Shown: in pieces, positions 6,122 through 47,924 of the stretch
Position numbering within the stretch: position 1 is the stretch's first letter
Layout: the number at the start of each line of letters is the position of its first letter
NCBI GenBank assembly: GCA_002104945.1
Contig: MCFH01000001.1
Location: forward strand, 1,240,001-1,304,000
DNA from: Piromyces finnis finn
Lineage: Eukaryota > Fungi > Neocallimastigomycota
Direction of reading: 5' to 3'
DNA: 64,000 bases
The notes under the pieces: generated by a model
Databases searched by the model: none
What the model was told of the DNA's origin: nothing
Seen by the model: the letters and a program-made list of their open reading frames with translations, nothing else
Position numbers and translations under genes: made by a program

Positions 6122-7721
6122 TCACTCATTCCATCCTTCATTCATTGCAGATAATAATTCTCTTTGATAATCTTCACTAATTTCCCAAACCATTATACCA
6201 GCAAGACCATTAACACGAGCAAATTTAGTCTTTTCCTTAATAGATTTTGGATCATCATAACCAATGAAGACATGAGTATTATAATTGTAAATGGATGGGC
6301 AAACTTCTAATTCATGGTACTTACGGACCCATGGAGAGTTAGCATTTAAAGGAGAGCTTAAAAGTCCTTGCTTTCTTAAACTGTAATAGGCCCAGACACC
6401 AGTTGGAGACCAGGCAACATCGAAAGCGTCACCAACAATTGCATTACAAACACCACCTTGAACACCCCAAGAATTTTGTTGACATAATTGATAGGCACCA
6501 TTATTATTATCAGAGGTAACCATCCATGATCTACCATAGAAAGCACCTCCAATAACAAGCTTACTTGGTGAAACACCCTTGTTAATGTAATCTGCAACAA
6601 CGTCAGAAATACTGGTTTGACCATTCTTATCATTTTCTTTATCAATATAAAGTGGTGAGTTGAAACCAGAGTAAGCGTTCCAAGCACCAGCCATATCGTA
6701 AGTCATAACACCAACCCAATCAACTACTTTGCTAATATCAATTAAGTATTCACCATAGATAGATGCATTAGCAGAATTGGCAATAGTAAGTAAGTATTTA
6801 TTACCGATTACATTTCTGATTTCCTTTAACATACTAAGGAAATTCTTAGCATCATCGCTTCTGAAGTGATTACCATCAAGACCACCACCTCCTGGGTATT
6901 CCCAATCAAGATCAACACCATCGAAACCATTAGTGGTAATTATATCTAAAATGTTGTTAGCGAATCTAGTTCTGGCGGCGGCATTAGCAGCAACATCAGA
7001 GAAGTATTGAGAACATGACCAACCACCAATAGAAACAACAACTTTAATATTTGGATATTTGGCCTTAATATCGTGAGTTAAAATACGAATTAAACCACCA
7101 TTACCCCATCCATAATCAGCCCATTCATCAAGGGTTAATACATTACCAGAAGCATCAACATTAAAGAAGGCATAGTTAATAACATCAACTCCTGAGAAAT
7201 CATAACTAGCAACGTTAGTGAATCTGGAGTAGATTGACCAGTTAGTAAGGTACATGATAACACCAGCCTTACCGTTTGAATTATTTGAGGTTTGAATTGG
7301 CTTGGTAGTAGTAGTTTTGACAGTAGTAGTAGTAGTAGTAGTAGTAGTAGTTTTCTTAGTAGTAGTTTTCTTAGTAGTAGTTTTCTTAGTAGTAATTGGT
7401 TTAGTAGTAGTAGTAGTTTTCTTAGTAGTAGTAGTAGTAGTTGGTTTAGTAGTAGTAGTAGTAGTTGGTTTAGTAGTGGTGGTTGGTTTAGTAGTGGTGG
7501 TTGGTTTAGTAGTGGTGGTTATTTTATTAACTGGATCTTCAAATAATTCACATGGACCATTTACACAACCTGCACCACAGTAGTTAGAACCAGTACCACA
7601 GTATCCATACTTTGAGCAACAGTGATCTGGATTTTTACATGGACAATTAGCGTTACAGGATCCAGTATTTAAAGAACTACAGTCTTCAACAGAAGTAGTG
7701 GTTGGTTTTTTGGTAGTGGTA

Positions 7722-7812
<91 letters not shown>

Positions 7813-8738
7813 TGCTACCGCAATTTCCTCCTTGACAACCTTCTCCACAGAAGAGATCACCAGTACCACAGTAACCATATTTAGAACAACAATAACCTTC
7901 TGGACATGGACAATCTGCACTGCAGCTACCATCTTCTGGGCATTCAACTGGTTTATTAAAAGCATAGCATGGTCCATTGATACAACCAGTACCACAATAT
8001 AATTCTGAACTGCCACAGTAACCGTAGCTAGAACAACATAATCCATTTTTACATGGGCAGTCTTTGTTACATGAACCACTTGGTAAAGCAGAACAGTCAG
8101 TTTGACTACTAATAGAAGCCTCTTCATCAACTTCACATTGACCAGTCTCTTCATTACAGGTTCCATTTTCACAGGGACATTTTTCATTACATTTACCATC
8201 TAAGATGAGATTTTTACATTTTAATAACCATTCCATACCTTCATATGGTGCATCATCAGAAGCAATAATTGGATTACAATCACCACTTTGACAGAAACTA
8301 CCACAAAATTCATCGGTTTCACCACATTCATCTAATTTTTGTTTTCAATAAAATTATATAATTTGAATTATTATTATATTGTTATTTATTTATTTATTAT
8401 TTTTTTAATATATATTATATTTGAACTTACTATATTGATTACAACATTGATGATATTGTGGATCACTTAAGTTGATAGTATCACCAACATAAACCTCTGA
8501 ATCATTTAAGAGTTGTTCATATTTATCTAATATATAAACAATTTATTATTAGTTTATGTATATTTTTCATTTGTAGTGTAAATAATTAACGTATTAATTT
8601 TAATTTACCTTTGAGTGGACAAAGTTTTAAAGCATTACAAGCTACATTATCTGGTATTTGAACTTTAGTAACCCCGTTACTAACAACTTTATTGACGATT
8701 AAAAGAATGCTTAAAAAAGATAAATGTTTATTAAACAT
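6122..8738 (-). CDS. Secreted GH18 chitinase with multiple CBM18/hevein-type chitin-binding modules and Thr-rich linkers
   Basis: Exons 8738-8609, ~8527-8431 and ~8331-6122. Signal peptide [20 protein letters not shown]; three CCSxYGYCG modules; SIGGW motif; intact catalytic [10 protein letters not shown] (DxxDxDxE); VMTYD; terminal [10 protein letters not shown]. Confidence 0.95.
7300..7520 (-). repeat. Coding Thr/Lys-rich linker repeat (TTTKP / TTKK units)
   Basis: Imperfect (GTA)n/(GTG)n repeats inside the chitinase ORF. Confidence 0.9.
7713..7812 (-). repeat. Coding poly-Thr linker built from blocks of ACA, ACT and ACC codons
   Basis: Plus strand shows (GTT)n next to (GTA)n/(GTG)n; it encodes ~31 consecutive Thr. 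Confidence 0.9.
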
Positions 8739-9858: not shown

Positions 9859-12245
9859 CCCATTAATAAATATTTATAAACTATTTATATGATTAAATTT
9901 TAAAAGTATAAATTAATAATAATAACAATAATAATAATATTATAAAAATTCAGTTATTCTAAAATTTCAGCTAAATTAATATATTAACTGAGTTTTACAT
10001 TAAAAAAAAAATTCGAATAAACTATAAGAATAAAAATATTTTAATTAATATAGCATTTTTTTTGTCTTTTTCGCCTATTTTATTATATTATTAATCATGT
10101 AATATAATAATTAGTGTTATTTAATTATTAAATGATTTTATAATTAATATATGAATATTTGAATATTGTAAAAATCCTTGATATATCATTTTATTTTAAT
10201 ATATATATTTTTTAAAAAAAACCCGCAGTAAAAAAAAAAAAAATTAATAACTTTAATAAATATTTTATTTAAGTTTATATTATATTAAATTTTATTTATT
10301 ATTATATAATCAAATTTTAAAAGTAGTAAACATTGTATTATATTTTATTATTTATTTATTTTTATTATTTTTATTTTTAAATATTTTTTAAATATATGTA
10401 CAATAAACTATATTTACCTCTATGCCAATAAAGGAAATTATTGAAAGTTTTTATTTTATTAATTTAAAATAAAAACGAAAAATAAAAATAAAAATAAAAA
10501 AATAAAAGTAAAAAATAAAATAAAAATAAAATAGAAAAACATAAACAAAAACAAAATAAATAAAAAATATAACAATGATAATAAAAAAATATAGAATATT
10601 AATCATAATTAAATTTATGAATTAGCTTATTACTTTAACTTTTTTTATATCCAATAATATTTTTATAAGAAAATTGATGATAATAATATATATTTAATAT
10701 TTTTTATAAATTTATATAAAGAATACTTTGATTTTATGTATTATTTTAAGAAAACATTAATCTTTTAATACAAGAAATAATAAATTATGAAATTCAAAAA
10801 AGAATATATATATATATATTTCTATTACTACTACATAATTAGTACCTGTAGTTTTATTAACAATATTTTAAAATTATATATGAAAAATTCAATTAGAATA
10901 TATATTAAAACGTTTATATGAAAAAGAGTGTTTTGTAAACATTTTATATTATTTATTGATTAACAAAAAAGTTGTGGTAATGGATTAATTAATAGTTATA
11001 ATTTAATATTAATATATTTTTTAATACTAATCATTAATGTCTTTAATGATTATATTTTATCAGTTAAAACTTTAATTTTGATTTTATATGACTAATTTGG
11101 GTATTAAAATGTTTATTGAACATAAATGCTTATAGATAAAGTATATAAAATTTGAAATTTTAATGGCTATAATTCTAGGTGTATTATTTAATAAAATGAA
11201 CTTCAATAGATATATATCTATCTTCAAAAGAAAATTAGCTTTTTTTTTTGTGATATTTATTTTTTTTATACATTTATATATTAATGAATGTATAAAAATA
11301 AAATTATAAATAAATAATTAAATTATTTCTTTTCTTTTTTCTCTTCTTTATATAATATGTTTTAATTTAATTAAACAAATTTTTAATATCTATAAATAAA
11401 AAACAATATCATGTTATTATTTTCATAGATACAGTACAAATATATAAAAAGTTAAAGAAGATTTTCCTTTCAAAATATATTTTGAATATTGTTGTTTTTT
11501 TTATGGATATAATTCTAAAAAACTAAAAAATAAATTTCCTTTTCAATATTATAAAGAATATTCTAAACTAGTTTTTATGAGTATAAAATTAAAAAGATAT
11601 TTAAACAATAAATATAGAATATTCTATTGATCTATTTTTCATTTAAATTTTTGATATTTCTGAAATTAACTATTATTATATAATTCAAATTTTTTAAAAA
11701 AAAGAAAATAAATAGAATTAAATATTAATTTTAAGAAAATGTTATTAAATTTATATAAGTGATAAGTGATTACATAGAACATAAAGATTAAATAAATAGT
11801 ATAATTAATCTACAAAATAAAATATATAAAGAATGTTCATTAAAACTTTAAAACAAAAGAATCAAATCATATATATAAACCTATTAATATTAGACTTTAA
11901 GTGAGACCTATATAATATTATAATTATATGAATTATATACTTAATTATGAAAACTTATGGTTTATAATTAATTAGTATATTTTTTATAAATCATTAAAGA
12001 TATATTTTTATATTAATAATTTTTATATAATAATTATATAAAAAATATAAAAATTTTATTAATTTTTTGTATCAAAAATTGAACTAATGTACGTTAATGT
12101 ATTATAATGTAAATAATTAAAAATATATTATTATTTCATTAATAAAAAACTTTTAATAATATCAAAAAGATATTGTTGATTAAAAACTTTTTAATTTATA
12201 AAGAAATATATCTTGTTCAGATAAAATTATACTTTAATTTAAAAG

Positions 12246-12866
12246 ATGAGTGAGGATAAGAGCCTATTTTACTTAGTATCCGAGTCACATACATTAACTG
12301 GCACATTAGGAAATAAAATTCAATTATTTATAAATGAATTTTTAAATTTAAAATCAAGTTGGTCAAATCTTGAAAATGAGAAAGAAAAAAAAGAAAAAAT
12401 AACATATATTAAGAATTCATTGTCTGATATTAATGAGTTAATTTCTAATTTAAAAAAATTATTAACAAATATTGAAGAAATGAAAAATAAGGTATGTAAT
12501 TTTATTCATTCTTATAAATATATTAATATTTATACATTTTAACGCAAAATCATAAAACATAATAATATAGAATGATGATTCTAAAACAAATATAGATGAA
12601 TTAATCGAAACAAGAAATAAATTGCTTGAGGTATTTTATATATATATATATTTTAAAAAAAGTTTATTTATTAAATTTATATTTATAAATATAATCATAT
12701 TATTTTTGAAATATTTTGTATAACCATTTGTATATATATATTATAAAATATTTATATATAAAAGCAAAGTAAGGAAAAAGCACGAAAAATTGATTCTTTA
12801 GTTAATTCTCTACATAATTTAGATAGAGATATACAAACATATTTTTCTTTAAAAGAAGATTCATGA
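12246..12866 (+). CDS. Small (135 aa) helical/coiled-coil hypothetical protein, possibly Mediator Med30-like
   Basis: Three exons 12246-12491, 12571-12630, 12765-12866, all phase 0 with GT-AG, ending ...QSKEKARKIDSLVNSLHNLDRDIQTYFSLKEDS*. The gene model is good; the family call is weak. Confidence 0.65.
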
Positions 12867-13821
12867 TTAAATGATTAAATATACCAATTTACATTGTAAT
12901 TTTATTTATTGCATAATAATCATTAATTTAATTTCTTTTTTCTTTTATTTATTATCATTATTATTTTTTTCTTTTTTATTTTGTTTTATTAGTAATAATA
13001 TTATTTATTGCCTTTAATAATTCATATTTCGAGTAGTAACAGATAGAGAAACAATAATAATGATAAAAAGAAAAAAATCAACTTTATATATGTTTACAAT
13101 AATTCAATAGTAATTATAATACTTATTACCTCATTTCTTTATTAAATAATTATCTTCAATTCAAATTTCTTTTTTCTTTCTTACTTTCTTTTTTTTTAAT
13201 GACCTATTAACTGATATAGTAATGAATGAATCTTAGAAATGTGTACATATATTTTATCAAATAAAAAGTTGAAAAAGAAGCATTTATATAAAAAGTAAAA
13301 GTAGAAATTAATAAATTGTTATTGTTAAGAATTTTTTATTATATGTTTTTATATTTTGGTTTCTTTATAAAGGTACTTATTTATTTTTCTTTTATTTTAA
13401 GATTGGCTAAATATATTGAAATGTTCGCTCCATTTCTTTTCTTTTATTTTACAATTTTTTTTAAGAATTTTATTATCATATATAAATAATAGTTATTTGT
13501 GTAAGGGTTAGGTCAAATAGTAAAGTATATAAAAAATAAATATTACTTTTATTTTTTAAAGTATATTTTTATTCCTAATATTTATTTTATTAAAAAAGAA
13601 ACCTCATTAAAAAAGAGGATAATATTGTTATTTAATTATTTTAATAAACACCTTTTTTTTTTATTAAAAAAAAAAAGGGACAGAAATAACATTAAAAAAT
13701 AAACAATATTGTATTTTAACAAAATATAATAAAAATAATACTAATTAATATAAATAAAAATATCATTCCACTTTTTGTATTGCATAATTTATCAAAAATA
13801 TAAATTAGTAAATTTTAAAAG

Positions 13822-22972: not shown

Positions 22973-25900
22973 ATGAATAATCAAAATCAACAATTCCGGC
23001 CACCAATGATGGGTAATGGCCAAAATTCATCATTCCAACAAGGTATGCCTTTTGGAAATCAAATGCCACCACAACCACAAAGAATGCAAAGTAAATATTT
23101 TTATATTTTAATTACAAATATATTTAATAGTATAAAATTTATATGAGAAATATTATATATTTTGTACTTATTGTTTTTCGCTATAAAGGTACACCACCAG
23201 TACAAGGTCAACCACCACAACAATTTATGCAAAATCGTCCCCCAAATTTCCAATCACCTTTAGCAAATCAACAAAGATCTATGTCTACACCACCACAACC
23301 AATGACTCCTCAACCAATGCACACTCAACCACCAATGGCATCACAACCACCACAACCAATGACTCCTCAACCAATGCATACTCAACCACCAATGGCATCA
23401 CAACCACCACAACCAATGACTCCCCAACCAATGCACACTCAACCACAACAACCTCAACCACAACAATCATTACCAAATCAACCATTTTTCAGACCACAAG
23501 GTTCTATGCAATCACAACCATCAAGTTTTAGTAGAAGCAGTACTCCACAAATGAGTAGACCAGGATTCCAAATGACCAGTGGCCAATTTTCACCACAATT
23601 ATCTTCACGTTCTCCAAGTCCAGGTTTTCCACCACCACCAACTGATAAACAAATGCCACAAAGTCCAAATATTGGAAGTGCTTCACCATTGGGACGTCAT
23701 AGACACAAATATCCAGAACAAATGGGTAAAGCTTACAGTAATGGTCCAGAATCTCTTCCAAATATGAATCAAGGTCCATCAACTCCACAACAATTTTTTG
23801 TTCCAGGAAATATGGGTCAACAAAATATGATGCAAAGAGATCTTCAATCCCCAGTTAATGGCTTTTCAAGTCCAATGAATAATTTAACTGCTGGATTTTC
23901 AAATATGAATTTAAATCAAAAAAATGTTACATCAGTTTCATTATTTAATGCTCAACCAAATATTCAGACTATTGATAATTATTTAGAGCCAGTAATTCCA
24001 GCTCAAGTAAATAATAAAGTTTCTTTTATTATAGTATAAGAGTAATGATGAAATTGAATTATTTTTTTTAATAATTAATTAATATTTAATATTTATAATT
24101 TATGATTTTAAATTAGTTTTGTATGCAATCAGAAAAGAAAAATCCATCAAATCAATATTGCTGTTCAACCTTAAATGCAGTTCCTCAAAATAATGCTTTA
24201 TTACAAAAGTCCAAAATTCCATTTGGTCTTGTTTTTGCTCCATACAAAAATATTGGTCCTGATGAAGTTAGTAAATTATTAAAGTTTTAATTTTATTAAC
24301 ATATAATCATTTCTTTATTTATTAATATTGATACTAAATTTACATACAATTAGCCTGAAGTTCCTGTTGTAAGTCCAGAAGTTATTGTTAGATGTAAGAT
24401 TTGTAGAGCATACATTAACCCATTTGTTACATTTGTTGACCAAGGAACAAGATGGAAATGCAATATTTGTCATGTTGTAAATGATTGTAAGTTGTTATTG
24501 CTATTTTGACAATAAACAATTTAAATAAAACTAATAAGACTTAAATTAAAATTATACAATAATACTTCATATAAAATATAGTACCAGCCTTCTATAGCTG
24601 GGATTCAAAGACAAGACAAGCTGTTGATAGAAATACAATCCCAGAATTAAACAGTTCTGTAATTGAATTTGTTGCTACCCAGGAATACACTGTAATTCAT
24701 TTCATTAGTTTGTTATAAAATTTATTATTATTATTAATTAAAATTATTAAATTTATTATTATATTTTTGTAAAAATTAAGCGTGGTCCACCACAACCAGT
24801 AGTTATAATGTTTGTTATGGATGTTTCATTCCAATCTATTCAATCAGGTATTTAATATTAAATATTAAAAATAAATTATATTTGTTTACTAATAAATAAT
24901 AAATTATTTTGTATTAAAATAAATATACTGTAATTGCTATTAAAATTATATGTAGGAATGGTTGCTACTGCTGCTCGTACAATATTAAGCACATTGGATA
25001 GTATTCCAAATTATGATAATAGAACTAAAATTGGTTTTATTACTTATGATAGCACTTTACACTTCTACAACTTAAATGTAATAATTAAATTAATAATTGT
25101 CAAAACAAAAATTATTCAAAATACTCAACTAATTTCGTAATATTTAATTTTATTAATTCATAAACAAAAAAAAAAAAAAAAAAAAAAATAAATACTATAT
25201 ATAAATTTTTAAAAAAATATATCAGTCAAACTTAAATGAACCACAAATGCTTGTTGTTTCTGATCTCGAAGATATCTTTATTCCAGCTCCAGATGATTTG
25301 TTAGTTAATTTATCTGAATCCCGCTCAGTTATTGAATCATTTTTAAACAAGTTAGGAAATATGCATAAGTCAACTCAAAATGTTAATAGTGCTTTACCTG
25401 CTGCATTAACTGCTGCTAATAAGATCATAGTAAATATTTAATAATATTGTAATAGTAATATATATAGAAGCGCTAATTTAATAATAATAATTCATTTTAG
25501 GGTCAAATTGGTGGTAAGATAGCTATCTTCCAATCAAATATTCCAAATTGTGGTAAAAATGCTTTGAAGAAACGTGAAGATCCATCTCTTTATAATACTT
25601 CAAAGGTATAATAAATATAAATTTTTAATTTTATAAGTAATAAGTATATATATAATTTAAGAATAATAATAACGCGTATGAATTATATATATTTAGGAAA
25701 GTACATTATTACAACCAGCTGATAATTGGTACAAGGAATTTGCACTTGATTGTTCCAGAAAGCAAATTTGTATTGATACATTTATATTTAGTGGTCAATA
25801 CACTGATATCGCCACTCTTTGTAAGTTAGAATAGAAGTTTAAGATTTAAAATATCATTAATCTAATTTGTTTTAATATTTTTATAATATTAATATTTATT

Positions 25901-26582
25901 TTTTTTTAAAAAATAGCTACATTACCAAGATTTACTGGTGGATCAATTTATTTCTATCCAGGATTTGATGCTAGTCGTGCTGAAGATGCTAATAAATTCT
26001 CTTCTGAATTAAGTAGATTCTTAAGTAAGAAAATTGGTTTGGAAGCTGTATTAAGAATAAGATCAACTAGGGGAGTTTCTGTAAAGGCTTGCTATGGTAA
26101 TTTCTTCCTTATGGCCTCAGATTTAGTTCAACTTCCAAATGTTAATCCAGATAATTGTTATGCATTAGAAGCTTCTATTGATAAAGATCTTACTAGTGAA
26201 CCATATATTTGCTTCCAAGGTGCTATTTTACATACTTCTAATAATGGTAATTAGTACTTCGTTATTAATGATATTTAAATTCTTTTATTGCTTAACGATA
26301 ATTAATATTTTTTTTTTTAATAATTTTTAGGAGAAAGACGTATTCGTGTATTTACAAATATTATTCCAGTTACTAATAACTTAACTGAAGTTTTTGCAAA
26401 TGCTGATCCAAGAGCAATTGCTGCATTCACAGCAAAGAAGGGTACTAAAATAATGAATATTGATATATTAAAAATTATAATACAAATAAAGGATATTTTT
26501 AATTACTAGCTATTATAAAAGATAGAACTAATAAATTATAAATATTACAATAAGACGATGAATTGTACAAAAATTTAATTAA

Positions 26583-26616
<34 letters not shown>

Positions 26617-27741
26617 TAAATAGCTGTTGAGAGAACCATTACTGATAAATTAGAAGATGCACGTAACTTGATTATCAATACTTGTATTGATATTATGGGT
26701 GCTTACAAGCAAGCATTTACTTCATCAGGACAAGCTTCACAACTTCTTATTATTGAAAATCTTGCATTATTACCAGTATTGACTCAAGCTCTATTAAAGA
26801 ATGTGAGAAAAAAATGAATATTAATCTATATAAAAATAATAGCAATAATTATCAATAATATTGAAATATTAATATTTTATAATTCCTTAAATATAAATAA
26901 TATATTAGATCGCATTCCGTCGTGGAAATATTCCATCAGATATTCGTTCATTTGCTTTGTCTGTTCTTTACGGTTCTCCAATAGAAAATGCATTATCTTA
27001 TATTTACAGTAAATTATATGCCATTCACATATTAGATGCTAATGTAATATTTTACTATTTTCTTAATTTTTAATATTTTATAATAATTTACATAATTAAT
27101 AATTCAAAATTATTTAAAATATATATTTTTAAATTTTTTAGACTGGTTTACCAATTCCAAACACTTCACAAGTTTATATGCCACCAAGAATTAATTTATC
27201 TATGCAAAGAATGACACAAGATGGTATTTACTTACTTGATAATTCCCAACATATTATCATTTGGTTATCTCGTGGCTCTAACCCAGAATTAGTTAATGCT
27301 TTATTCCAAAAACCATATGAAGCTATTGCATCTGGAAAGGTAAAAATACAGTAAATATAATATAATTAATAAAAAGAATTTTAAATATTAATACTTTTTT
27401 TATTTTCTTTAATTAATTATTTATAGACTACCTTACCAACTCCAAATAATGATTATGCTACTCGTATAAATAACATTATAGAATTCATTCGTAAGGATCG
27501 TTTAATATCCTATAATAATTCACCATATGTATACATTGTTAAAGAAGATGATAATACTAGAGGATGGTTTATTTCTCATATGGTTGAAGATAAATTAGAC
27601 AGTGAACTTTCATATCCACAATTCCTTTCTCATTTAAGAGAACAAGTAATATTATATAAATTAAGAGAGTATACTTTTAATGAAAATAGTTTATTAATAT
27701 TTTTTTATATTTTCATATAGCTTTCCAAGTATTCATCATAA
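22973..27741 (+). CDS. SEC24: COPII coat subunit Sec24
   Basis: Pro/Gln-rich N-terminus; zinc finger [29 protein letters not shown]; trunk domain [30 protein letters not shown]; [12 protein letters not shown]; gelsolin-like domain GIYLLDN; stop TAA 27739-27741. Confidence 0.96.
23290..23445 (+). repeat. 57-bp coding tandem repeat ([19 protein letters not shown] x ~2.7) in the Sec24 N-terminus
   Basis: Near-identical units start at 23290, 23347 and 23404. Confidence 0.9.
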
Positions 27742-28667: not shown

Positions 28668-31600
28668 TCAAGCTATTTTCATATTTCTTTTAGCATAATT
28701 TTTAATGTAGTAATAACCACAAATAGTTAGTATAATAGATAGTATACCAATTAATAATTCAATAAATTGGAATGTTTTAGAAGAAACAAAATAAATAGTT
28801 AATCTGTTTTTATCCCATCTTTATATTAATAATATTCAATTAGTTTTTATTCATAATTATATTTAAAGGAAAAGAACAATAAATAATAAATGTTTTTAAA
28901 ATTATTATTTACCTGCTTTCTGTCCAATTTGGTAAATTTCTATCATTTATATAGAACAAATCTTTTTTAGCATCATGTTCGATACCTATACCATAAGCTG
29001 GATGAGCATATGATCTGCCTTCTATACAGTAACCAAGAATACATTGATAATTTCTTAATGAATATGGTAAAGCATCTATTTTTGCTTTTGCGTCTTTATC
29101 TAAATCTTTATAGTTAGGATACTAAAAATTAAAAATTAAGGATTACTAATATTATATTATCAAATTCATCATATGTTTGATTACAATAATATATGTTTTA
29201 CCTCCAAATCTAAACAATCATTAATAATTGTACATGGAATAGTGGTATTTCTACCTGTAGATTTTATAATTGCATAATTTGCAATCCACGAGTCATAATT
29301 GTAGTTTGAGTTAATAGCACCACTTAAAGATACACCATTAAAAACTCCAGAATAATGGCTAATTTTACTTACTTCACTATCTTTTTTTTTTTTTAAAGAA
29401 TTTAAAAAACAAATTATTTTTTTAATTAGCTAATTTAATTATTAACATTTTTATTTATATTTGTATTTTATTATTATTACTTAATGTCGCGCCATTATTA
29501 GAAGCTATTAATTTACTTGTTAATGAACATGTAATATTATTTGATAAACAATGAATTAAATCATTTACCTATATTAATTATATTTAAAAAATACTTTATT
29601 AATAATATTTAAAATATTTATATTTATGCATTAAATATATCAATTACATATTGACAATCAACAGAAACAGATGGTGGTATTGAATTTATTTCAAGATCTG
29701 ATTCTTTATTTTGAGCATACAACCATATTGCTTTTGCAATAATATCTGCTGTTTTACATACTGTATTATCATATTTAACAGAATCACTTTCGACATCAAA
29801 TCCACTATGATAATGTCTATTAAAAGACATATATAAAAAAAATAAAAGTTATGTTATTTTTTGTAATTATGATAGATCATTATTTTTAATATTTATTCTA
29901 ACTTATTTGTATATTCAGTTTGAAAATCTCCAATAACAACAGCTGGTATTTTTTGTTTTTTCAAAAAGGATTGTGCACTTGCTGGTGGTAATCCAAGATT
30001 TTTTTCTAAGCCTTCCCATGCTGGCTTAATATTATATGAAGAATAACTATCTTCATACGTAGAATATACCCTAGATATTAAATTTGTTATTTTTAATGTT
30101 TCTGGATCAGTTTCATCGTCAACATGCATATAATAGGCTGGATTATTGATATCATCACATCCACTACAGGTCAACTGATTTAATTCTATTATTCCTTTGA
30201 TATTATTTAATGTAATATTTTTAAAATCATCAACATACATACATGGATCTTGACATGATGAAAACTGAGAACACATATAATTACTGTTATAATCATGACT
30301 TTTACATTCATATGAAGAAATATCTTTTACAAATCTTTGTGAACCACCATAACCATATGATTCACCACTAAAAAATGTAAATACTATATGATTTTGAAAT
30401 TGTTCAGGTAATACTTCAGACTTTTTTTTTTGGGGGGGGGTATAATATATAATAAAGTAAATATTATGATATTTAAAAGTTATTTACTATAAAATTAAAT
30501 AATTAAATTACTTTTGATAAAGCATCGGCAATTGCTAAATTTGCTACAAATCCACCGATTTGACTATTTGTTCCTATTGTATTATCATGAAATAAACTAT
30601 TTCCATCTATTTGTGAGCTAACAATTACAATTTTTTTCCCATCATCTGGATTAATTTGTTTAGAATAAGTACCCCATACAGAATTTCCTCCTATTGGATC
30701 GCAGTGATCTGTATAATATCATAAAACAGCAACAAAAAAAATATATGATGAAAATGTAAATTATTTATTTTAATATATAAGTTAAAATATTAATAGTTAA
30801 GATACCTCTTGATAAACATGTTTCTGAATTTTTTGAAGCATACATGAATGAATCAAATTTAATAGAATATAATGGATATTTTTTATAATTTCTTTTTTTA
30901 TTAAATTCATCTGCCTTTTTTTAAATGAATAAATAAAAAATTTTTTTCATAAATAATTAAAATATATTTATAATCATTTATATATATTAAACAACTTTAA
31001 AAAAGCAATTTACTTTAATTATTGCATTTACTCCTTCTACTTCATATGGCTTATCAAGAGACATTCCATAAATTGGGAAACTAAAATATTCATAAAGCAA
31101 CCCGTCTCCCTTTATTCGTATAATAAATATATCAATAATAGTATTCATAAATTATAAAGTAATATAGTTTAAATAATTTTTTCTTTTAATCATACATAAG
31201 GATTCCATTTATAATTTGCTTTTTCTCCTTCTGTGTACTACATGTTTTATTTTTTTGATATATTAAATATTTATAAATATCACTAAAAAATGTTAATATT
31301 TAAAAAATAGATTTGTAAAAATAATAAGAAAACCATACCATTCCAAATTCGCAATTTGGACATTCTTTATCAGGTGAATATGGTACAGGCTCTTTAGTAT
31401 CATCATATATTACAATAAGTCCTTCAACTTTATTTGTTGCTTCTAAATCTCTTAAATTTTTTCTTTAATATATTAAAAATTTAAGTATAGATAATTCATG
31501 ATGTAAAATTGTTTTACGTGTTTTTTAAAAAAATATTTTACTTGTTAATAAGATCTGCCTGAAGAACTACAGCAAATTTTCCTTTTAGATTTGATTTTTT

Positions 31601-32065
31601 AAAAATTTCAAATTCTTCATTTGTTGATATTCTGTATATAATAGAGGCTGAAGAACTTGCTGTTTATTTTTTTTATCATTTATTTATTTATTATTTATTA
31701 TTATTATTATTATTATTATTTAAAAAAAAAAAAATAAAAAAAATAAAACAAGTAATTAATAAAAATTTAAATTAATTTCTTTAATTTCTTTATTCTTATA
31801 TTTTTATTGTTATAAATTTACTAAATAATGAATAATTTACATTTGCTTCCAATTTCAGAAGTCGCATTTAAATATTTTGGAAATACAACATTATTAAGTT
31901 CCTGTTCCATTATTTTTTCAAGGGAAGTACAAAGACATGGTATTTCTTTATATTATTTTATAAAATTTATTAATATTAAGTCCATTAAATTTTTATTAGC
32001 ATAATAGCTGATACTTTACCTACTAATAATAGTAAAAATATATTATAAAAATATTTTATTTTCAT
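28668..32065 (-). CDS. NCSTN: Nicastrin-like protein, copy 1
   Basis: Spliced product: signal peptide; YLNATSEIGS; DGNSLFHDNTIG...AIADALS; FSGESYGYGGSQRF (DYIGS region); IIELNQL; LPPASAQSFLK; HYHSGFD; WTESRW; one C-terminal TM and a short tail; TGA at 28670-28668. Confidence 0.9.
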
Positions 32066-32564
32066 ATTAATTAATTAAATATTTAATTTAAAACGAATTG
32101 TTTGTATTTAGGAGTTTGGATTATATTTAAATAATTCAAAATTTTCTAAGTAATTATTGTAATAATAAAATAATTTTTTTTTTATTATTATTACTAATTT
32201 TAATATTATAATAATATTAATAATAATAATATTTATTATAATACTAATTCAAGGATTGTTATTCTTAAAAAAAGTGTATATTTAGTTTTATTTAATATTA
32301 TATAATAAATATAAAATTGTAAATTTCTTCGAAATGAATGAAAGTTCTTTTTTTTTTTTTTGAATTAAATGATTTTATTAAAGTTTGAATGTATTACAAC
32401 TTTTTATTACACAAATATAAATAAAATATATATTATATATATTAAACATATATCATGTGATTTTAAATAATTTATTACTTTTTTATGTTATAAATAATCA
32501 AATTAATATAATATTTTACAGGGTATTAATTATTTATAATTTATTTTAAAATAGAATTTTAGTT

Positions 32565-35500
32565 CTATGCTAACTTTAAATACTTTTTTGTATATGTATT
32601 AATGAAATAATATCCAATAATAGTCAAAATAACAAATACAATTCCTACTAATAATTCAAATATTTGAAATATTCTGGATGTTGTAAAGCAAATAGTTATT
32701 GAATTTGAAGACCATCTAATAAAATAAAATGCAGGTATTATTAATAAATTTTAAAAATTTAAATATTAATTATTTTTGATATTCAAAAAAATATAGATTT
32801 ACCTGCTTTCAACCCAAGTTGCTTCATCTTCTTTCTTTACAAAATATTTATTATTAAAAACATCATATCGTAATCCCGATCCATATGCTGGGTGAACAAA
32901 CGCTTGGCCTTCAATACAGAAGTTATTTATACATTGATATTTTCTTTTTGAGTATGGCATAGATTCAATTTTTTTCTTGGATTCATCATCTAATTCATCA
33001 AAATTAGGATACTATATATCATAATTTGTGAATTTCATTATAAATCATTAATCATATGGCATTTTTTAATAATTTTTTTTTTATTTTATTACCTCAAATT
33101 GTTTCATGCAATCGTCAATATATTTACAAGGAAAAGTTGTATTTCTTCCTGTTGATGTTATTAGAGCATAATTTGTTACCCAAGAATCAAAATTACTATA
33201 GGTATGAAGTGTTCCATTTAAAGAATAGTCATTAAATATACCTGAATAATGACTTACTTTAGATAATTTACCTATATCAATTATGTATATAAAATTAAAT
33301 ATAATTACTATAAAATTGAAATAAAAATTATATATTTATTTAATTACCTTCCACTTGACGTGTTGAATTATTTGATGTCAATAGTGTTTGCGCCAATGGA
33401 CAAGATATATTATGTGAAAGACAATACATCAATTCATTAACCTTTATGTTTTATTTGAAAAAAATATATGCAAATAAAAAAATTTTTAATACAATTCAAT
33501 ACAATTTTTTTTAAACAATTTTATTTTTATTTTGTTATTGATTTTTATACTATTAATAAATAAGAAATGAACTTTATAAATTACATAATTGCAATTAACA
33601 GCGACAGATGGTGGAATTAAATTAACATCATAATCAATTTCTTTATTTTGAGCATAGAGCCATACTGATTTTGCAATAATATCTGCTGTTTTACATACAG
33701 TATTGTCGTAAGTGGTTGAATTACTATCAATATCAAAACCGCTATGATAAAATCTTAATTAAATATATAGTAGAGTTTAATAAAAAAAAAAAAAATTTTT
33801 TTAAAAAATAAAACTAAAGTAAAATAATATTTATTATTTATTATTTATTATTTACTTATTTGTAAATTCAGTTTGAAAATCGCTTATAACAACCGCTGGA
33901 ATTTTTTGTTTTTTTAAAAAAGATTGAGAACTTGCTGGAGGTAATCCTAAGTTTTTAATTAAGCCTTCCCATGCAGGTTTGATATTATATGATGTATTTT
34001 GGCGTTTTAATTTATTTATGGTTTCATTTCTACTGGAACTGTCTATATTATTATTATTATCTACAATAATATTAGAAGCATCATTATTATTTGGTATAGC
34101 AGGTACACTATTTCCAAATACGGAATAAACTTTTGAAATTAAATTTGTTATTTTTAGAGTTTCTGAATCATTTTCATCATCAATATGCATAAAATATGTT
34201 GGGCTATCTGTATTGTTGCATCCACTACATGTTAATTGATTCAACTCTATAATTCCCTTGATATTATTTAATGTGATATTTTTAAAATCATCAAAATACA
34301 TGTATGGGTTAAAACATGAAGCATAATTTGAACATTCTTTATTTACACGTTCATTTTTATTGAGACATTTAAATGGTTCTGATATATCGTTGACAAATCG
34401 TTGAGATCCTCCATAACCAAATGATTCACCATTAAAAAACATAAATACTATATGATTTTGAAATTGTTCTGGTTTAATGTCTGACTTTGTTTATAAATAT
34501 ATGATTATTTATAAATAAAAAATATTTTTACAGCTATTACTTATTATAAAAATATTTAATATATAAAAGCAAAATATATACTCTTGATAAAGCATCTGCA
34601 ATGGCTAAATTAGCTACAATTCCACCAATTTGACTATTTGTTCCTATTGTATTCTCATGAAATAAACTGTTTCCATCGAGTTGAGCTGTTATAAATACAA
34701 TCTTTTTACCATCATTAGGATCTATTTTTCTTGAAAAAGAGCTCCAAATTGAATTACCACCAATTGGATCACAAGTTTCTTTTTATTATATAATAAAATA
34801 TTTAAAAGTTAATATATAATATTATTAAATAATATGAATTGAATTTTATAATTATATCAACTATACTTCTTGATAAGCATGTTATTGTATCTTCAGGTGC
34901 TAGCATAAAAGAATCAAATTTAATTGAATATAATGGATAATTTTTATATTTTCTTTTTTTATTAAATATATTAGCCTATTTTGAAAATTTTAATTCATAT
35001 TAATGCTAATTCATTATTTAATTCAAAAGTTATTATATATCTACTTCGATAATTGGTAGGACTGCATCTTTTACTGAATATCCATTTCCTGTAATACCAA
35101 AAATTGGAAAATCAAAATATTTAAATAACATTCCGTCTCCCTTTTAAAAATTTTATATTAACAGTATATATAAATTTAATTTTTAATATGATTTATTAAA
35201 TAAATTATTATTTTAAAATGTTTACTTACATGGGGATTCCATTTATAATTTGCCCTTTCATCTCCGGAATACTATTATAAAGGTATATAGTTATATTTCA
35301 TATTATATTTAATGAATTCGTATTTATTAATTTAAATATTATTATTTCATTGAAGAAAAAAACTTACCATTCCATATTCACAATTAGGACATTTTTTATC
35401 CGGAGAATATGGTTTTATCATTGGCTTATCATCATAAACTACAATTACTCCTACTACTTTTTTGGTTTCTTCTAATTTTACTAATTTTTCTCTTTACATA

Positions 35501-36068
35501 TTATTTCCATAAATAATAATAAGAGTTATTAAAAGTATTTTATTAAATCTAAAAATACTATACAAAAATATTATATATATATTTTAATAATTTACGCATT
35601 AACAAATACAGCTGATATAACAATTGCATATTTATCTGTTAAATCGGAATTATTTATAAATGATTTAAAATCTTCTTCTGAATCAATTCTATATATAATA
35701 CCCGAGGATGAACTTGCTATTGTAAATTTTATAGAATTTAATATTTACATTTTAAATTTTTTAAACATTTCATACAATTATTGATATATCTATATTTTTT
35801 AGAAATTACATTTGCTTCCAATTTTTGTTTTTGCATTTAATATTCTTGGGAATACAGTATCAAAATTTTTATATTCAGTTACTAAAGTCTGTGTAATATC
35901 TTTTTTTACTTTGCTACTTGTGCATTTTAAAACTTATTAAAAAATAGAATAAATTAACTTCATTATTATAATGAATATATAATAAACAATGAAAATTAAT
36001 ATATATACTTTTATATATTTTTTACCTTGTAACAGAAAATATATGATAATAAAAGAAAGAAGTTTCAT
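32565..36068 (-). CDS. NCSTN: Nicastrin-like protein, copy 2
   Basis: Same motif order: RILNAKTKIGS; DGNSLFHENTIG; FFNGESFGYGGSQRF; IIELNQL; LPPASSQSFLK; FYHSGFD; WVESRW; TM; TAG at 32567-32565. Intron positions largely match copy 1. Confidence 0.9.
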
Positions 36069-36927: not shown

Positions 36928-39133
36928 ATGGAAACTAGATACGGTAATAAATAAGTTAATTAATTAATATTAGAAATTTTAATTTATAAAAACAAAAAGA
37001 AAATAGAAAATGGAAAAATTCTGTTAATAATAAATTAATGTTTTTTTATATTATATAATTTTATTAAATATATAATAAAATAATAATAAATAAAAAAAAA
37101 AAAAAGCCCTTCTTTCATTATCCGACAAAACCGGTCTTATTGACTTAGCCAAAGGTTTAAATGAAGTTGGTGTTACTTTAGTTGCTTCTGGTGGTACATC
37201 TAAGGCTATTCGTGAAGCTGGACTTCCAGTCATGTAAGAAATGTTATTAATAATAAATTATCCAATTTAATCAAAAATTAATTAGTATTGTTATTTATAT
37301 AGCGATGTTGCCGATATTACTAAGGCTCCAGAAATGTTAGGTGGTCGTGTTAAGACTCTCCACCCAGCTGTTCACGGAGGTTAATAAATTAATAAAAATA
37401 ATAAAATTGTTAATAAAAATAAAATGATTAAATATTCTTATTAAAAAATGAAAAATAATGGTATAAATAGGTATCTTAGCCAGAGAAATCGAATCCGATG
37501 TTAAGGAAATGAAGGAAAGAGGTTACAACATGATTGACTATGTTGCCTGTAATCTTTACCCATTCCAAAAATGTGTTGCTAGACCAGATGTCACTATTCC
37601 AGAAGCTGTTGAAGAAGTTGATATTGGTAAGAAATTAAATAATTAATTTAATAAATAAAATTTTAAATAAAAATCAAAATTTAATAGTAAGAAATTAAAA
37701 TATAATTAATATAAACTTAAAAATAAAAAGGTGGTGTTACTCTTCTTCGTGCTGCTGCTAAGAATCACGCTCGTGTTACTATTCTTAGTGATCCAAATGA
37801 TTACCCAGAATTCCTTGCTGAATTAAAGAAGAACTTCCAAGAAACTGGTAAGGCTTCTATTTCTCAAGAACTTAGAAACAAGTTCGCTGTTAAGGCTTTC
37901 TCTCACACTGCTGAATACGATACCGCTATTTCCGGTTACTTCAGAAAACAATACTCTGAAGGTGTTTCCAGATTAGAACTCCGTTACGGTGCTAACCCAT
38001 ACCAAAAGCCAGCTTGCGTCTTCACTAACAAGTCTGAACTCCCATTCAAGGTTTTATCTGGTAGTCCAGGTTACATTAACCTTTTAGATGCTTTCAATTC
38101 TTACCCATTAGTTAAGGAATTAAAGGAAGCTCTTGGTCTTCCAGCTGCTGCTTCTTTCAAGCACGTTTCTCCAGCTGGTGCTGCTGTTGGTACTCCATTA
38201 TCTGCTGATGAAGCTAAGGTCTTCATGGTTGATGATCTTACCGTTCCATTAACCCCATTAGCTTGTGCTTATGCTCGTGCTCGTGGTGCTGACCGTATGT
38301 CTTCATTCGGTGACTGGATTGCTCTTTCTGATCCATGTGATTTAGCTACTGCTAAGATTATTTCTCGTGAAGTTTCAGATGGTGTTATTGCTCCAGGTTA
38401 CAATGCTGATGCCTTAGAAGTTTTAAAGAAGAAGAAGGGAGGTAGATACTGTGTCTTACAAATCGATCCAAATTACGAACCAGAAGAAATTGAAACTCGT
38501 CAAGTCTTTGGTATGTACTTACAACAAAAGAGAAACAACTTAAAGATCACTAAGGAAGTTTTCAACAACATTGTTTCATCTAACAAGAACCTTCCAGAAT
38601 CTGCTATTCGTGATTTAATTGTTGCCACCATTGCTCTTAAATTCACTCAATCTAACTCCGTTTGTTACGCCAAGAACGGTATGGTTGTTGGTCTTGGTGC
38701 TGGTCAACAATCTCGTGTTCACTGTACTCGTTTAGCTGGTGACAAGGCTGATAATGTCTGGTGTCGCTTCCACCCAAAGATTCTTGCTTTCAACTTCAAG
38801 AAGTCTGTTAAGCGTGCTGAACGTTCTAACTGCATTGATCAATACATTACTGATCAAATTGATAACTTAGAACAATGGAAGCAATGCTTCGAAACTGAAC
38901 CAGAAATGTTAACTCGTGAAGAAAAGAAGGAATGGATTAGCAAGAATACTGATGTCGTTGTTAGTAGTGATGCTTTCTTCCCATTCCCAGATAACATTCA
39001 ACGTGCCAGTCAAAGTGGTGTTAAGTACGTTGCTGCTCCAAGTGGTTCTGTTCAAGATCCAGTTGTCATTGAAGAAGCCAACAACAAGAACATGACTTTA
39101 TGTTTCACTAACTATCGTCTTTTCCACCATTAA
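36928..39133 (+). CDS. ADE17: Bifunctional AICAR transformylase / IMP cyclohydrolase (PurH; Ade16/Ade17)
   Basis: METRY|[11 protein letters not shown]...ASGGTS...[21 protein letters not shown]...[18 protein letters not shown]...[12 protein letters not shown]...[11 protein letters not shown]...FTNYRLFHH*. Strong codon bias. Confidence 0.97.
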
Positions 39134-44606: not shown

Positions 44607-47600
44607 TTACCATACATTATAACTGTTAAATATTTCCTCTGAATTCAATTCATTGTTTAATACTATTTTTGAAGGTTTTTCTTTTACCTTTTGACCTTTT
44701 GAATAATCTTGTGGTTGAATAGAGGAATATAAATCATCTATAACTGCATTTTTATGAGCATCTGAATTTGATCTACTTTTTGAATGATTGGAATTATCAT
44801 ACATGGTACGATCAGACTGAGCTGTAAATGGAATGGTTCGAGGAAAATCATTAGAATTAGTACTACGAGTTGAATATCCATGATTTAACATCGTAGCGTC
44901 TGTATTATTTGTACCATTCATTGAAATATAGATTCTATTCGGTGGTGTTGGTGGACGAATAATTGATTTATAGTCATTAGTTTCCTTTCCTGTAAATTGG
45001 GTTAAATTAACAGATGGAAGACCGGTTTGATTATCAAGTACTGCCAAGGTTCTAACAAAATCTGGATTATTTGATTTTTTAGATTTCTTTTTCTTACCAA
45101 ATACTCTTTTTACATTTTTTATTTTGGATTTTTGAGAAATATTTTTATGTTTTGATTTCGGTGATATATCTCCCCCAGAATATATTGTTTTAACGCTCTT
45201 AGAATCACTACTAGTGATATTACTATCACCTAAATTATAAATCGGAATGGAAAAACTCATTCCATCTGGTGAATTTTCATGAAGGGTTGTCGGAGAATCT
45301 GCCATCGATATATCTGCATTTGTCATACCTGGAATAATTAAGTTCTTAAGTTTAAGATTACTGTCTTCATGATATATGTCTTCTATATTTTCACCATTTC
45401 CAATTCTAAATAATTGTTCATCTGTTAATATTCCATTATCACTTAAACTCTTATGACCTTCTTCATTAGTCCAATGCGGTATATAATTTTTAGAAGATTT
45501 ACTTCCATTATCTTGATTATTTAAATCTTTGAGAATTTGATTCATTTTTTGACTAGTAGATTTTTTTCTCTTAAAAATCCATAATGCCATTACAAATAAG
45601 CTAATAGCAACAAATGGTGCAAAATATAATACTACAGTTTCAACTGGTGCCTCTTTTATTTGTTCTAAAATATTACCAGTTAATGGAAACTTACTTTTAT
45701 AATCTTTACTACTATCACCATCCCCATGAACTGACGCGGATGATAATACTTTTGTATTGATTTTTTGATTACCACCCTTTGGAAAAGCTGTTGATGTTGG
45801 TTGAGTTTCATTTAACATCTTTGGAGATATAGTTTTTAATGTAACTCTATTTACTTTTATATTTTCAATATCCTCTATTCTCTTTGGTTCGTTTACAACT
45901 TTAGTATCAATCATTTTGGTATCTTGTATTTCCTTTGTTTCAGGTGTTTTAGTTTCTATTATTTTAGTATCTTGAATTTGTTTAGAATCTTGAATTTGTT
46001 TAGAATCTTGAATTTGTTTAGAATCTTGAATTTGTTTTGCATCTTGAACTTGCTTTGTTTCAGGTGTATTTTTAGTCTCAATATTTTTTGTGTCCAACTG
46101 TTTTGTTTCTTGAACAGTTTTTGTAGAAGATTGAGGTGCTTTGGTATCAAGTTTTTTTGCATCAAGTTTTTTCGTATCTTCGATTTTTTCAATTCCACCT
46201 AATATATTTTGACCAGTTGGAAAGCCTATAATTGGTAATCCGTTATCAGGTTTTTGATTTTCTTTATTTAATTCATTTAATTTTTTTGTTTGTTCTTTTG
46301 GATTATTTATTTCTAAATTGTTTTTTGGTGAATTATTAGGTAGCAAAGGTATATTATTATTAGACGGTATGTCTGTACGCTTTGTCGGAATAGATGCTAT
46401 ATTAGTTGGTTTCTCATTATGCTTTGTTTTATCTGGTTGTGTTGGATATATAGTAAAGTTTGGTTCAACTTTGGTTTCACTATTTTTATTATGTTCTTCA
46501 ATGTGCTTTGCAGATTCATTTAAATATTTAATAAAGTTAGGATCATTCCATATAAACTTTGATGGATTGAAATAACTTGGTGGAATTGGAGGCCAACATA
46601 AAGGTGGACTCGTTGGCCAAGCTTGTGGATATGGTAATGTTGGAGGCCACATTGGTGGCGGAGTTAAAGGCCAATTTGATGGTCTTTGTTGAGGCCAGTA
46701 ATTTATATTTACTGGTGCATTACCTGATTGAACCCATTTCTGTGCTTCTTTATTATTAAATCCATTATTGTAAAACTTATTAGAGAAATCACACCATAAT
46801 CCAAATGATTTCATATCTTCTTTATTAGTTTCATCATTTGACTTATTGAAAAAATCACCAAAATTAAAGTTTTGATTTTTAATTCTTTCATTAGGATTCC
46901 ATATATTGTTTTTGTTTTCATTTTTATCACCTGTATCATTTCCTTGCTTATTATCATTGGATTCTGAATTTAACTTTGAACTGGATGTTGATGTTTTATC
47001 ATTATTATTTTTTAATTCTTGGTTGTTATTTTCCCATGGAATATATGGAAATCCAAAAAAGCTATTTTTACTTGAATATTTTTCTGTTGCTGATTCAATT
47101 ATTTTTTTATTAGCTAATCCAAAATCTTTATCTAAATTTGTATTAATTAATTACCAAATAATTTTATATTATTAAATTTTGTTTTAAAAATGAAATAAAT
47201 TTTAATATTATATGAAAATATATTCATTTCTGTTACCATTGCCTTCTATTTCTGGAGGATTACTAAGCCATTGAAAACTATTGTTATTATTAACATTATT
47301 TTCCTTTTCAGACAATGAATTTTTTTCATTTTCTCCCCAATGGAAAGTTGGAAATCCAAAATTGTTTTTATCATTTTTATTATATAAATTTTTTACTGAG
47401 AAAGTTCCATCATTTTTATTTTCAATTTTATCATTAAATTTCCATTCAAATGTTGGAATATTAAACTTTAGTTTTTCATTTTTATCATTTATATTTGTTT
47501 CATCATTTGTAGGATTTGGTTTAATTTTATCATTAATAAATAATTGAATATCGGGTATGTTTTGATTTTTTTGATTTAATGGAAAATTTGATTTGTTTTC

Positions 47601-47924
47601 TATACTATTGTTCTTTTTAGAATTTAAATTTTCTTTTGAAGTTTCACTACTCAACCATTGAGAATTATCTTTGCTCCTTGGCAAATATGTTTTTGATGAA
47701 TAAATATCTTTTTCGGATTTTTCTAATTCTCTTGAATTCAAATAATGAATATTATCATTTACATTATTGTTATTTTCATTTTCATTATTATAAATATATT
47801 CTTCGAAGTGTTTTTCATCTTTTTTACTTATATTATCTTCTTTGGTATCAAGTTTAGATTGCTTATTAATATATTTATTATATGAATTTGTAAATATATC
47901 TGAAATATTTAGATTTAAATTCAT
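44607..47924 (-). CDS. Orphan ~1,070-aa single-pass membrane protein with Trp-Pro-rich and hexapeptide repeats
   Basis: ORF 47924-47208 splices (GTAACA...TTTAG, intron ~47236-47131) into an open frame continuous with ORF 46814-44607. One hydrophobic segment, VVLYFAPFVAISLFVMALWIF, is followed by KRKK. The true N-terminus/signal exon is unresolved. Confidence 0.7.
45969..46058 (-). repeat. 18-bp coding repeat (DSKQIQ / DAKQIQ units)
   Basis: Tandem ATCTTGAATTTGTTTAGA units on the plus strand. Confidence 0.9.

Follow-up and report, generated by a model that had tools for sequence, protein, structure and literature searches.

A tandem pair of diverged nicastrin genes in the gut fungus Piromyces finnis

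Nicastrin, a membrane glycoprotein of type I, serves gamma-secretase as a scaffold and as a cap over the site where substrates enter. Its transmembrane helix binds APH-1, seeding the assembly of the complex, and its ectodomain, placed over the substrate-docking site of presenilin, excludes proteins whose own ectodomains have not been shed. Vertebrates produce alternative gamma-secretase complexes by means of the paralogues PSEN1/PSEN2 and APH-1A/APH-1B; there it is presenilin and APH-1 that vary, while nicastrin, normally single-copy in animals, does not. For a fungus, a comparable heterogeneity is an inference only. Here we describe a locus of the rumen fungus Piromyces finnis (Neocallimastigomycota) in which nicastrin itself is doubled. 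It lies in a window of 64 kb (the whole stretch of contig MCFH01000001.1, assembly GCA_002104945.1, that was analysed, and to which all P. finnis coordinates below refer), where two nicastrin genes, A and B, follow each other head to tail on the minus strand between 28668 and 36068.

The presence of gamma-secretase in fungi outside the Dikarya has already been published (Merenyi 2023, PMC10406608). Supplementary Data 2a of that paper covers all four subunits with homologous groups, some of those of presenilin having a MYND finger, and the conservation in the group called "Chytridiomycota" is 1.0 for presenilin and nicastrin and 0.75 for APH-1 and PEN-2. This group consists of eight species, including P. 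finnis v3.0, Piromyces sp. E2, N. californiae and Orpinomyces, and presenilin and nicastrin are found in all eight. For the gamma-secretase components of Orpinomyces, the relevant passage of PMC10512342 cites Youssef et al. 2013. An original prediction, made from the letters of this DNA, had proposed that the lineage retains gamma-secretase, and this agrees with both papers, but it is not new; the annotation of both genes as nicastrin was also known. The novelty lies in the tandem duplication and its dating, in an independent duplication in Neocallimastix and in the asymmetric divergence of the copies; when the literature was searched for nicastrin in combination with Neocallimastigomycota, Piromyces or paralogues, no paper reporting a pair of nicastrins from such fungi came up.

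Among the described nicastrins, that of Dictyostelium purpureum (PDB 4R12) is the top match of A and B in both sequence and fold, and GY.GS, IIELNQ and LPPSS.SFLKK are common to all three, although it comes from another supergroup (Amoebozoa) and is 24-27% identical to the fungal proteins. Human NCSTN (PDB 5A63, 6IDF and 8OQY, chain A; 8OQY, the structure of the APH-1B complex, is among the fold matches) resembles A and B in having an ectodomain with a small and a large lobe, a single C-terminal transmembrane helix, a Glu-x-x-(D/G)-Y-x-G-S region and an LPP.S.Q.FL motif. It is, however, about 20% identical to them, carries DYIGS where the fungus has GYGGS, and differs from the fungal proteins by the N-terminal Cys pair, which is missing throughout the phylum. 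A and B also have a Cys-rich insert after the GYGGS region that sets them apart from the human protein, to which A adds an Asn-rich loop.

Two true nicastrins at one locus

Both gene models were built by hand from the minus strand, from 36068 to 28668, in a window that is strongly AT-rich (G+C about 19%). The upstream, faster-evolving copy A (32565..36068) has 14 exons and a coding sequence (CDS) of 2286 nt for 761 residues; the downstream, conservative copy B (28668..32065), separated from A by 499 nt, has 14 exons and a CDS of 2151 nt for 716 residues. All 26 introns (13 per gene, 69-181 nt) are bounded by GT-AG, and their positions and phases match between the two genes. The claim from which we started, that of two intact head-to-tail genes with shared intron positions, is therefore confirmed by the hand models in bounds, orientation, open frames and introns. 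Identity is 60% between the two proteins (715 aligned residues) and 71% between the coding sequences, whose nonsynonymous divergence (dN) is 0.27 and synonymous divergence (dS) 0.93 (NG86).

Full-length Pfam searches and fold predictions were run with the public P. finnis proteins, that is, BCR36DRAFT_341074 (P0156, UniRef name Nicastrin), which is letter-for-letter identical to model A, and the "Nicastrin-domain-containing protein" P0152 (689 aa), which corresponds to model B from Met28 onwards. The large lobe (PF05450, cut-off 25 bits) is recognized at 119 bits (2e-34) in A and 125 bits (4e-36) in B, and the small lobe (PF18266, cut-off 25.9) at 125 bits (3e-36) and 127 bits (1e-36), respectively, while the match of both proteins to Peptidase_M28 is weak and partial (22-24 bits). 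Even single exons match Pfam Nicastrin above the cut-off: exon 8 at about 1e-6, and exon 9, the core of the large lobe, at 1.6e-17 in A (33856..34484) and 6e-21 in B (29903..30420). Among solved structures, exon 9 is again closest to 4R12 (1e-16; 1.2e-16 for exon 9 of B).

The AlphaFold2 models, made with an alignment of 63 sequences, are confident (predicted confidence, pLDDT, 89 in A, 93 in B), the sole poorly predicted stretch being the Asn-rich loop of A. In Foldseek searches, both copies found 4R12 as the best match (TM score 0.85-0.88, E 1e-46 to 1e-50); human nicastrin, taken from gamma-secretase structures, followed at TM 0.76-0.79, and nicastrin matches ranged overall from 1e-41 to 1e-50. 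Nicalin (NCLN, a component of the BOS complex of the multipass translocon; PDB 7TM3 chain 7 and 9C7U chain A) shares with A and B a distant M28-derived ectodomain and a transmembrane anchor, and it is the next-best fold. It is nevertheless much weaker, ranking below every nicastrin chain (TM 0.66, E 1e-18 to 1e-20, root-mean-square deviation about 10 A), and aminopeptidases follow at 1e-9 or weaker. A nicalin identity was rejected on this lower-ranked fold match, on an identity of about 10% and on Pfam, which assigns both proteins to nicastrin.

The topology is of type I in both copies, as judged from hydrophobicity and the AlphaFold2 helices, with a hydrophobic exon 1, a large ectodomain, one C-terminal hydrophobic helix and a short tail. 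Exon 1 encodes a signal-peptide-like N-terminus in A (36026..36068) as well as in B (32020..32065). The C-terminal helix, which holds the single transmembrane segment, spans residues 726-757 of A (32580..32675) and residues 681-712 of the 716-aa model of B (28683..28778; residues 654-685 of P0152), and its pattern is common to all members of the phylum. Both copies fall inside a Neocallimastigomycota clade with 100/100 support among fungal nicastrins. A and B are true nicastrins on every feature that could be tested here.

Every motif that had been listed for the pair was found in both copies. The sequence GES(F/Y)GYGGS (GESFGYGGS in A, GESYGYGGS in B) aligns with human GETFDYIGS within chain residues 323-349 (HMMER); the Glu, Gly and Ser of this DAP region are invariant or nearly so in 63 nicastrins, and the D and I of DYIGS are both replaced by G in A and B, much as in GYVGS of Dictyostelium. 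Further on in exon 9, IIELNQL aligns with IIELNQI of Dictyostelium nicastrin and LPPAS(S/A)QSFL (LPPASSQSFL in A, LPPASAQSFL in B) with human LPPSSLQRFL, and W(V/T)ESRW precedes the long C-terminal helix. The Glu of the substrate-gating region had been assigned to IIELNQL. This motif is indeed present and kept, but the Glu that is classically linked with the recognition of substrates (human E333) is that of GES.GYGGS (residue 305 of A) and not that of IIELNQL (residue 365 of A); both Glu residues are retained in both copies. The reported lack of the N-terminal Cys pair also holds, and it extends to every Neocallimastigomycota nicastrin recovered, while C.RLLN.....GC is kept in the consensus of other fungal and animal nicastrins. 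Judged from the recovered proteins, this loss is a phylum-wide trait and not one specific to A and B.

Age and origin of the duplication

The same tandem is found in Piromyces sp. E2, where the order of the locus, between CK2beta and Sec24, is the A orthologue, a gap of 1264 N (11803-13066) and then the B orthologue, of which the 3' half is present, the gap sitting where its 5' half would be expected. Since the pair is found in Piromyces sp. E2, the duplication predates the split of this species from P. finnis. As an aside, the stretch matching exon 3 of A is inverted on the Piromyces sp. E2 scaffold (KZ150936.1; L011 7169-15306).

Neocallimastix also has two nicastrins, P0153 (687 aa) and P0157 (777 aa), which lie on different contigs (two assemblies of N. 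lanati supplied both loci, N. californiae the P0157 locus only). Each of them sits inside its own copy of a block with the order CK2beta - ATIC - nicastrin - Sec24 - bystin. By tblastn, the P. finnis window carries the same block (18660-41440) with nicastrin doubled in place, and two of its genes serve here as syntenic anchors: an ATIC gene (AICARFT/IMPCHase; 37100..39130, plus strand), divergent from nicastrin A, also identified by Pfam and common to Neocallimastix and Piromyces sp. E2, and a Sec24-type COPII gene (22990..27663, plus strand), convergent with nicastrin B. Public gene calls on the contig likewise place the two nicastrins side by side, flanked by ATIC and the Sec24-type gene. 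The Neocallimastix duplication is old as well, because the flanking genes differ between its two blocks by a dS of 0.4-0.5, about as large as their dS to P. finnis (0.39). The doubling of the whole block points to an old, large-scale (segmental) duplication, and this fits the number of duplicated BUSCOs, which is 110 of 267 complete in N. californiae versus 10 of 269 in P. finnis.

The two pairs therefore have the phylum and the syntenic block in common, and each consists of one shorter, conservative copy and one longer, long-branched copy, but the Neocallimastix copies are on separate contigs, arose with a whole block and are not one-to-one orthologues of A and B. In a maximum likelihood tree of 26 rows (LG+C20, posterior mean site frequency), A groups with its Piromyces sp. 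E2 orthologue and one metatranscriptome sequence (support 100/100), and B with its own orthologue and two metatranscriptome sequences (96/94); the A and B clades join each other at 100/99, with the Neocallimastix copies outside. Approximately unbiased (AU) tests reject a grouping of A with P0157 (p 0.0016) and one of B with P0153/P0159 (p 0.0026). A single ancient duplication, with A orthologous to P0157 and B to P0153, is ruled out by the tree together with these tests.

On the sequence evidence, then, the tandem duplication falls in the Piromyces lineage, after its split from Neocallimastix and before that between P. finnis and Piromyces sp. E2, and the Piromyces tandem and the Neocallimastix segmental duplication are separate events. 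The original prediction had spoken of an old, retained duplication. That it was retained is borne out by the selection on both copies (see below), but "old" applies in a relative sense only, as the event postdates the Neocallimastix split. A second word search, made with the phylum alignment, gave no more Neocallimastigomycota nicastrins, and Anaeromyces, Caecomyces and Pecoramyces are unplaced.

The metatranscriptomes also contain other nicastrins of the phylum. Three Neocallimastigomycota nicastrins occur in the Joint Genome Institute (JGI) metatranscriptome sample 3300018087 (L002, L009 and L010), namely the A-type P0160, the deep-branching P0003, and P0158. P0003 and P0155 form a clade that is sister to all other members of the phylum and that may come from a genus not yet sampled or be one more old paralogue.

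Divergence of the copies and their possible roles

Both copies are under purifying selection, with a dN/dS against their Piromyces sp. E2 orthologues of 0.21 for A (656 codons) and 0.12 for B (501 codons). Beyond this, they have not evolved alike. Branches on the A side of the tree are about twice as long, and six sites that are otherwise invariant in the phylum are altered in all members of the A clade (T300M, C346Y, I604L, N605H, N607Y/F and G672N/H), while the B clade keeps all six and alters no phylum-invariant site. A has 12 N-x-S/T sequons and B has 5. The biggest difference between the two is a loop of 36 residues in exon 9 of A that is not present in B; this Asn-rich, low-complexity stretch (about residues 411-450; 33990..34109) has a pLDDT of 48-59 and lies in a region whose length varies among the Neocallimastigomycota. 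Of the two, A is the faster and derived copy; B has stayed conservative.

Uninterrupted frames are found on transcript-like JGI contigs of 1.5-2.8 kb for an A-type (P0160), a B-type (P0154) and a Neocallimastix (P0157) nicastrin. In four sequencing runs of the same organism from three studies, the shares of the sampled 31-mers of 28668-36068 that were present are 0.51, 0.48, 0.47 and 0.46. The 31-mers that lie wholly inside CDS exons make up 0.253 of the total if only those of A are counted, 0.235 if only those of B are, and 0.488 for the two genes together, and genomic DNA would give 1.0; because the observed shares fit 0.488, they suggest that both spliced mRNAs are present and that splicing is much as modelled.

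On this evidence, A and B are two functional paralogues of nicastrin. A local tandem duplication in the Piromyces lineage gave rise to them, and both have kept the two lobes, the conserved residues, the signal peptide and the transmembrane helix. A has evolved about twice as fast, gaining the Asn-rich loop and more sequons and losing a Cys that is otherwise invariant in the phylum. We consider it somewhat better than an even bet that B continues the ancestral job in a complex with the APH-1, presenilin and PEN-2 of this genome and that A provides an alternative subunit with the same partners. Because A keeps the conserved core and the transmembrane pattern, it probably assembles with these same partners. 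The outcome would be two isoforms of the complex that differ in the substrate-screening surface of the ectodomain or in its glycan coat, or that are used at different life stages; as the original prediction had suggested, the two complexes may have different substrate gates. Two nicastrin variants kept by selection in one lineage lend themselves to a comparison of what the ectodomain screens and of whether isoforms of the complex are stage-specific (zoospore, thallus). The finding in itself is an ordinary one: a gene that was already annotated was duplicated in one lineage, and the complex had been reported from this phylum before.

Several points speak against the proposal of an alternative subunit. 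We know of no gamma-secretase substrate or role in any fungus, and the place of A or B in a gamma-secretase complex is deduced from their sequences. The case for expression rests on k-mer shares, and the RNA nature of the four runs is a guess. With regard to the history, the groupings submitted to the AU tests were chosen after inspection of the tree, and the age bracket is coarse because the genera behind the metatranscriptome sequences are unassigned. Finally, the lost Cys and the faster rate of A could equally reflect a drift toward another role.

A simpler possibility, which we consider tenable but clearly less probable than a division into two subunit types, is that both copies do the same job in the same complex and that the pair is kept for dosage or for split expression (for example, zoospore versus thallus), with gating unchanged. 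Both copies keep the same fold and nearly all residues conserved across the family: in 36 other nicastrins, from fungi and animals, 89 columns are conserved to at least 85%, and of these one is changed in the A clade alone, one in the B clade alone and two in both. Between the clades, 16 sites are fixed differently and 248 alike, and the k-mer shares suggest that the copies are expressed jointly in the same bulk samples. Against this stand the asymmetric rates and the six phylum-invariant sites that are changed in the A clade only, including the lost Cys, together with a cluster in residues 603-615, which contains six of the 16 differently fixed sites. Such an asymmetry looks like more than neutral redundancy, and pure dosage duplicates seldom remain intact to a dS near 0.9.

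We find it improbable that A has left gamma-secretase and acts alone or in another membrane complex, in the way that nicalin acts in the translocon-associated BOS complex of the endoplasmic reticulum. The higher dN/dS of A, its longer branches, the loss of the conserved Cys and the additional sequons would all be compatible with such a departure, but A keeps the transmembrane-helix pattern found throughout the phylum and 85 of the 89 family-wide conserved columns, differing alone in one, and its fold is far nearer to nicastrin than to nicalin. That the pair is an artefact of collapsed or split haplotypes or of misassembly, or that one copy is a pseudogene, can be dismissed with hardly any hesitation, given the 60% identity, a dS of about 0.9, open frames across 14 exons, the same tandem in an independent assembly of another species and purifying selection; a haplotype artefact had been judged unlikely from the outset.

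It is also tempting to speculate that two nicastrins have been retained on two independent occasions in anaerobic gut fungi, through a tandem duplication in Piromyces and a segmental one in Neocallimastix, each time as a conservative copy beside a fast, longer one, and that these fungi run two complexes with different screening ectodomains. If true, gamma-secretase heterogeneity would for the first time be seen to rest on nicastrin, and there would be a handle on the role of the protease in fungi. This broader idea, derived from comparing the Piromyces and Neocallimastix sequences, is a doubtful one, to which we give far less credit than to an alternative subunit in Piromyces.

Annotation and neighbouring features

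Three small corrections to public annotation follow from this work. In P. finnis, the public B model P0152 has no signal peptide; the upstream exon 1 (32020-32065), which is missing from it, and the 5' part of exon 2 (31841-31945) add 27 residues, and the N-terminus of the transcript-derived B-type homologue P0154 matches the added N-terminus. In Piromyces sp. E2, the model PIROE2DRAFT_69514 (928 aa) is a chimera that joins the A orthologue, across the gap of 1264 N, with the 3' part of the B orthologue: it is 70% identical to A in residues 15-568 and 76-78% identical to B in residues 567-910. In Neocallimastix lanati, the P0153 model of 687 aa is truncated, starting about 60 residues into the protein, and a tblastn match to exon 2 lies upstream of it (L003 9765-9905).

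An Rfam search of the window gave no match. Elsewhere in the window, an intron-free open reading frame of 704 aa (6125-8236, minus strand; local G+C 35%) encodes a GH18 chitinase with three chitin-binding type 1 stretches. Beyond the ATIC gene, two open reading frames on the minus strand, of 735 aa (44610-46814) and 238 aa (47211-47924), have no Pfam match; the first of them is conserved beside CK2beta in Neocallimastix, with about 40% identity over 351 aa.

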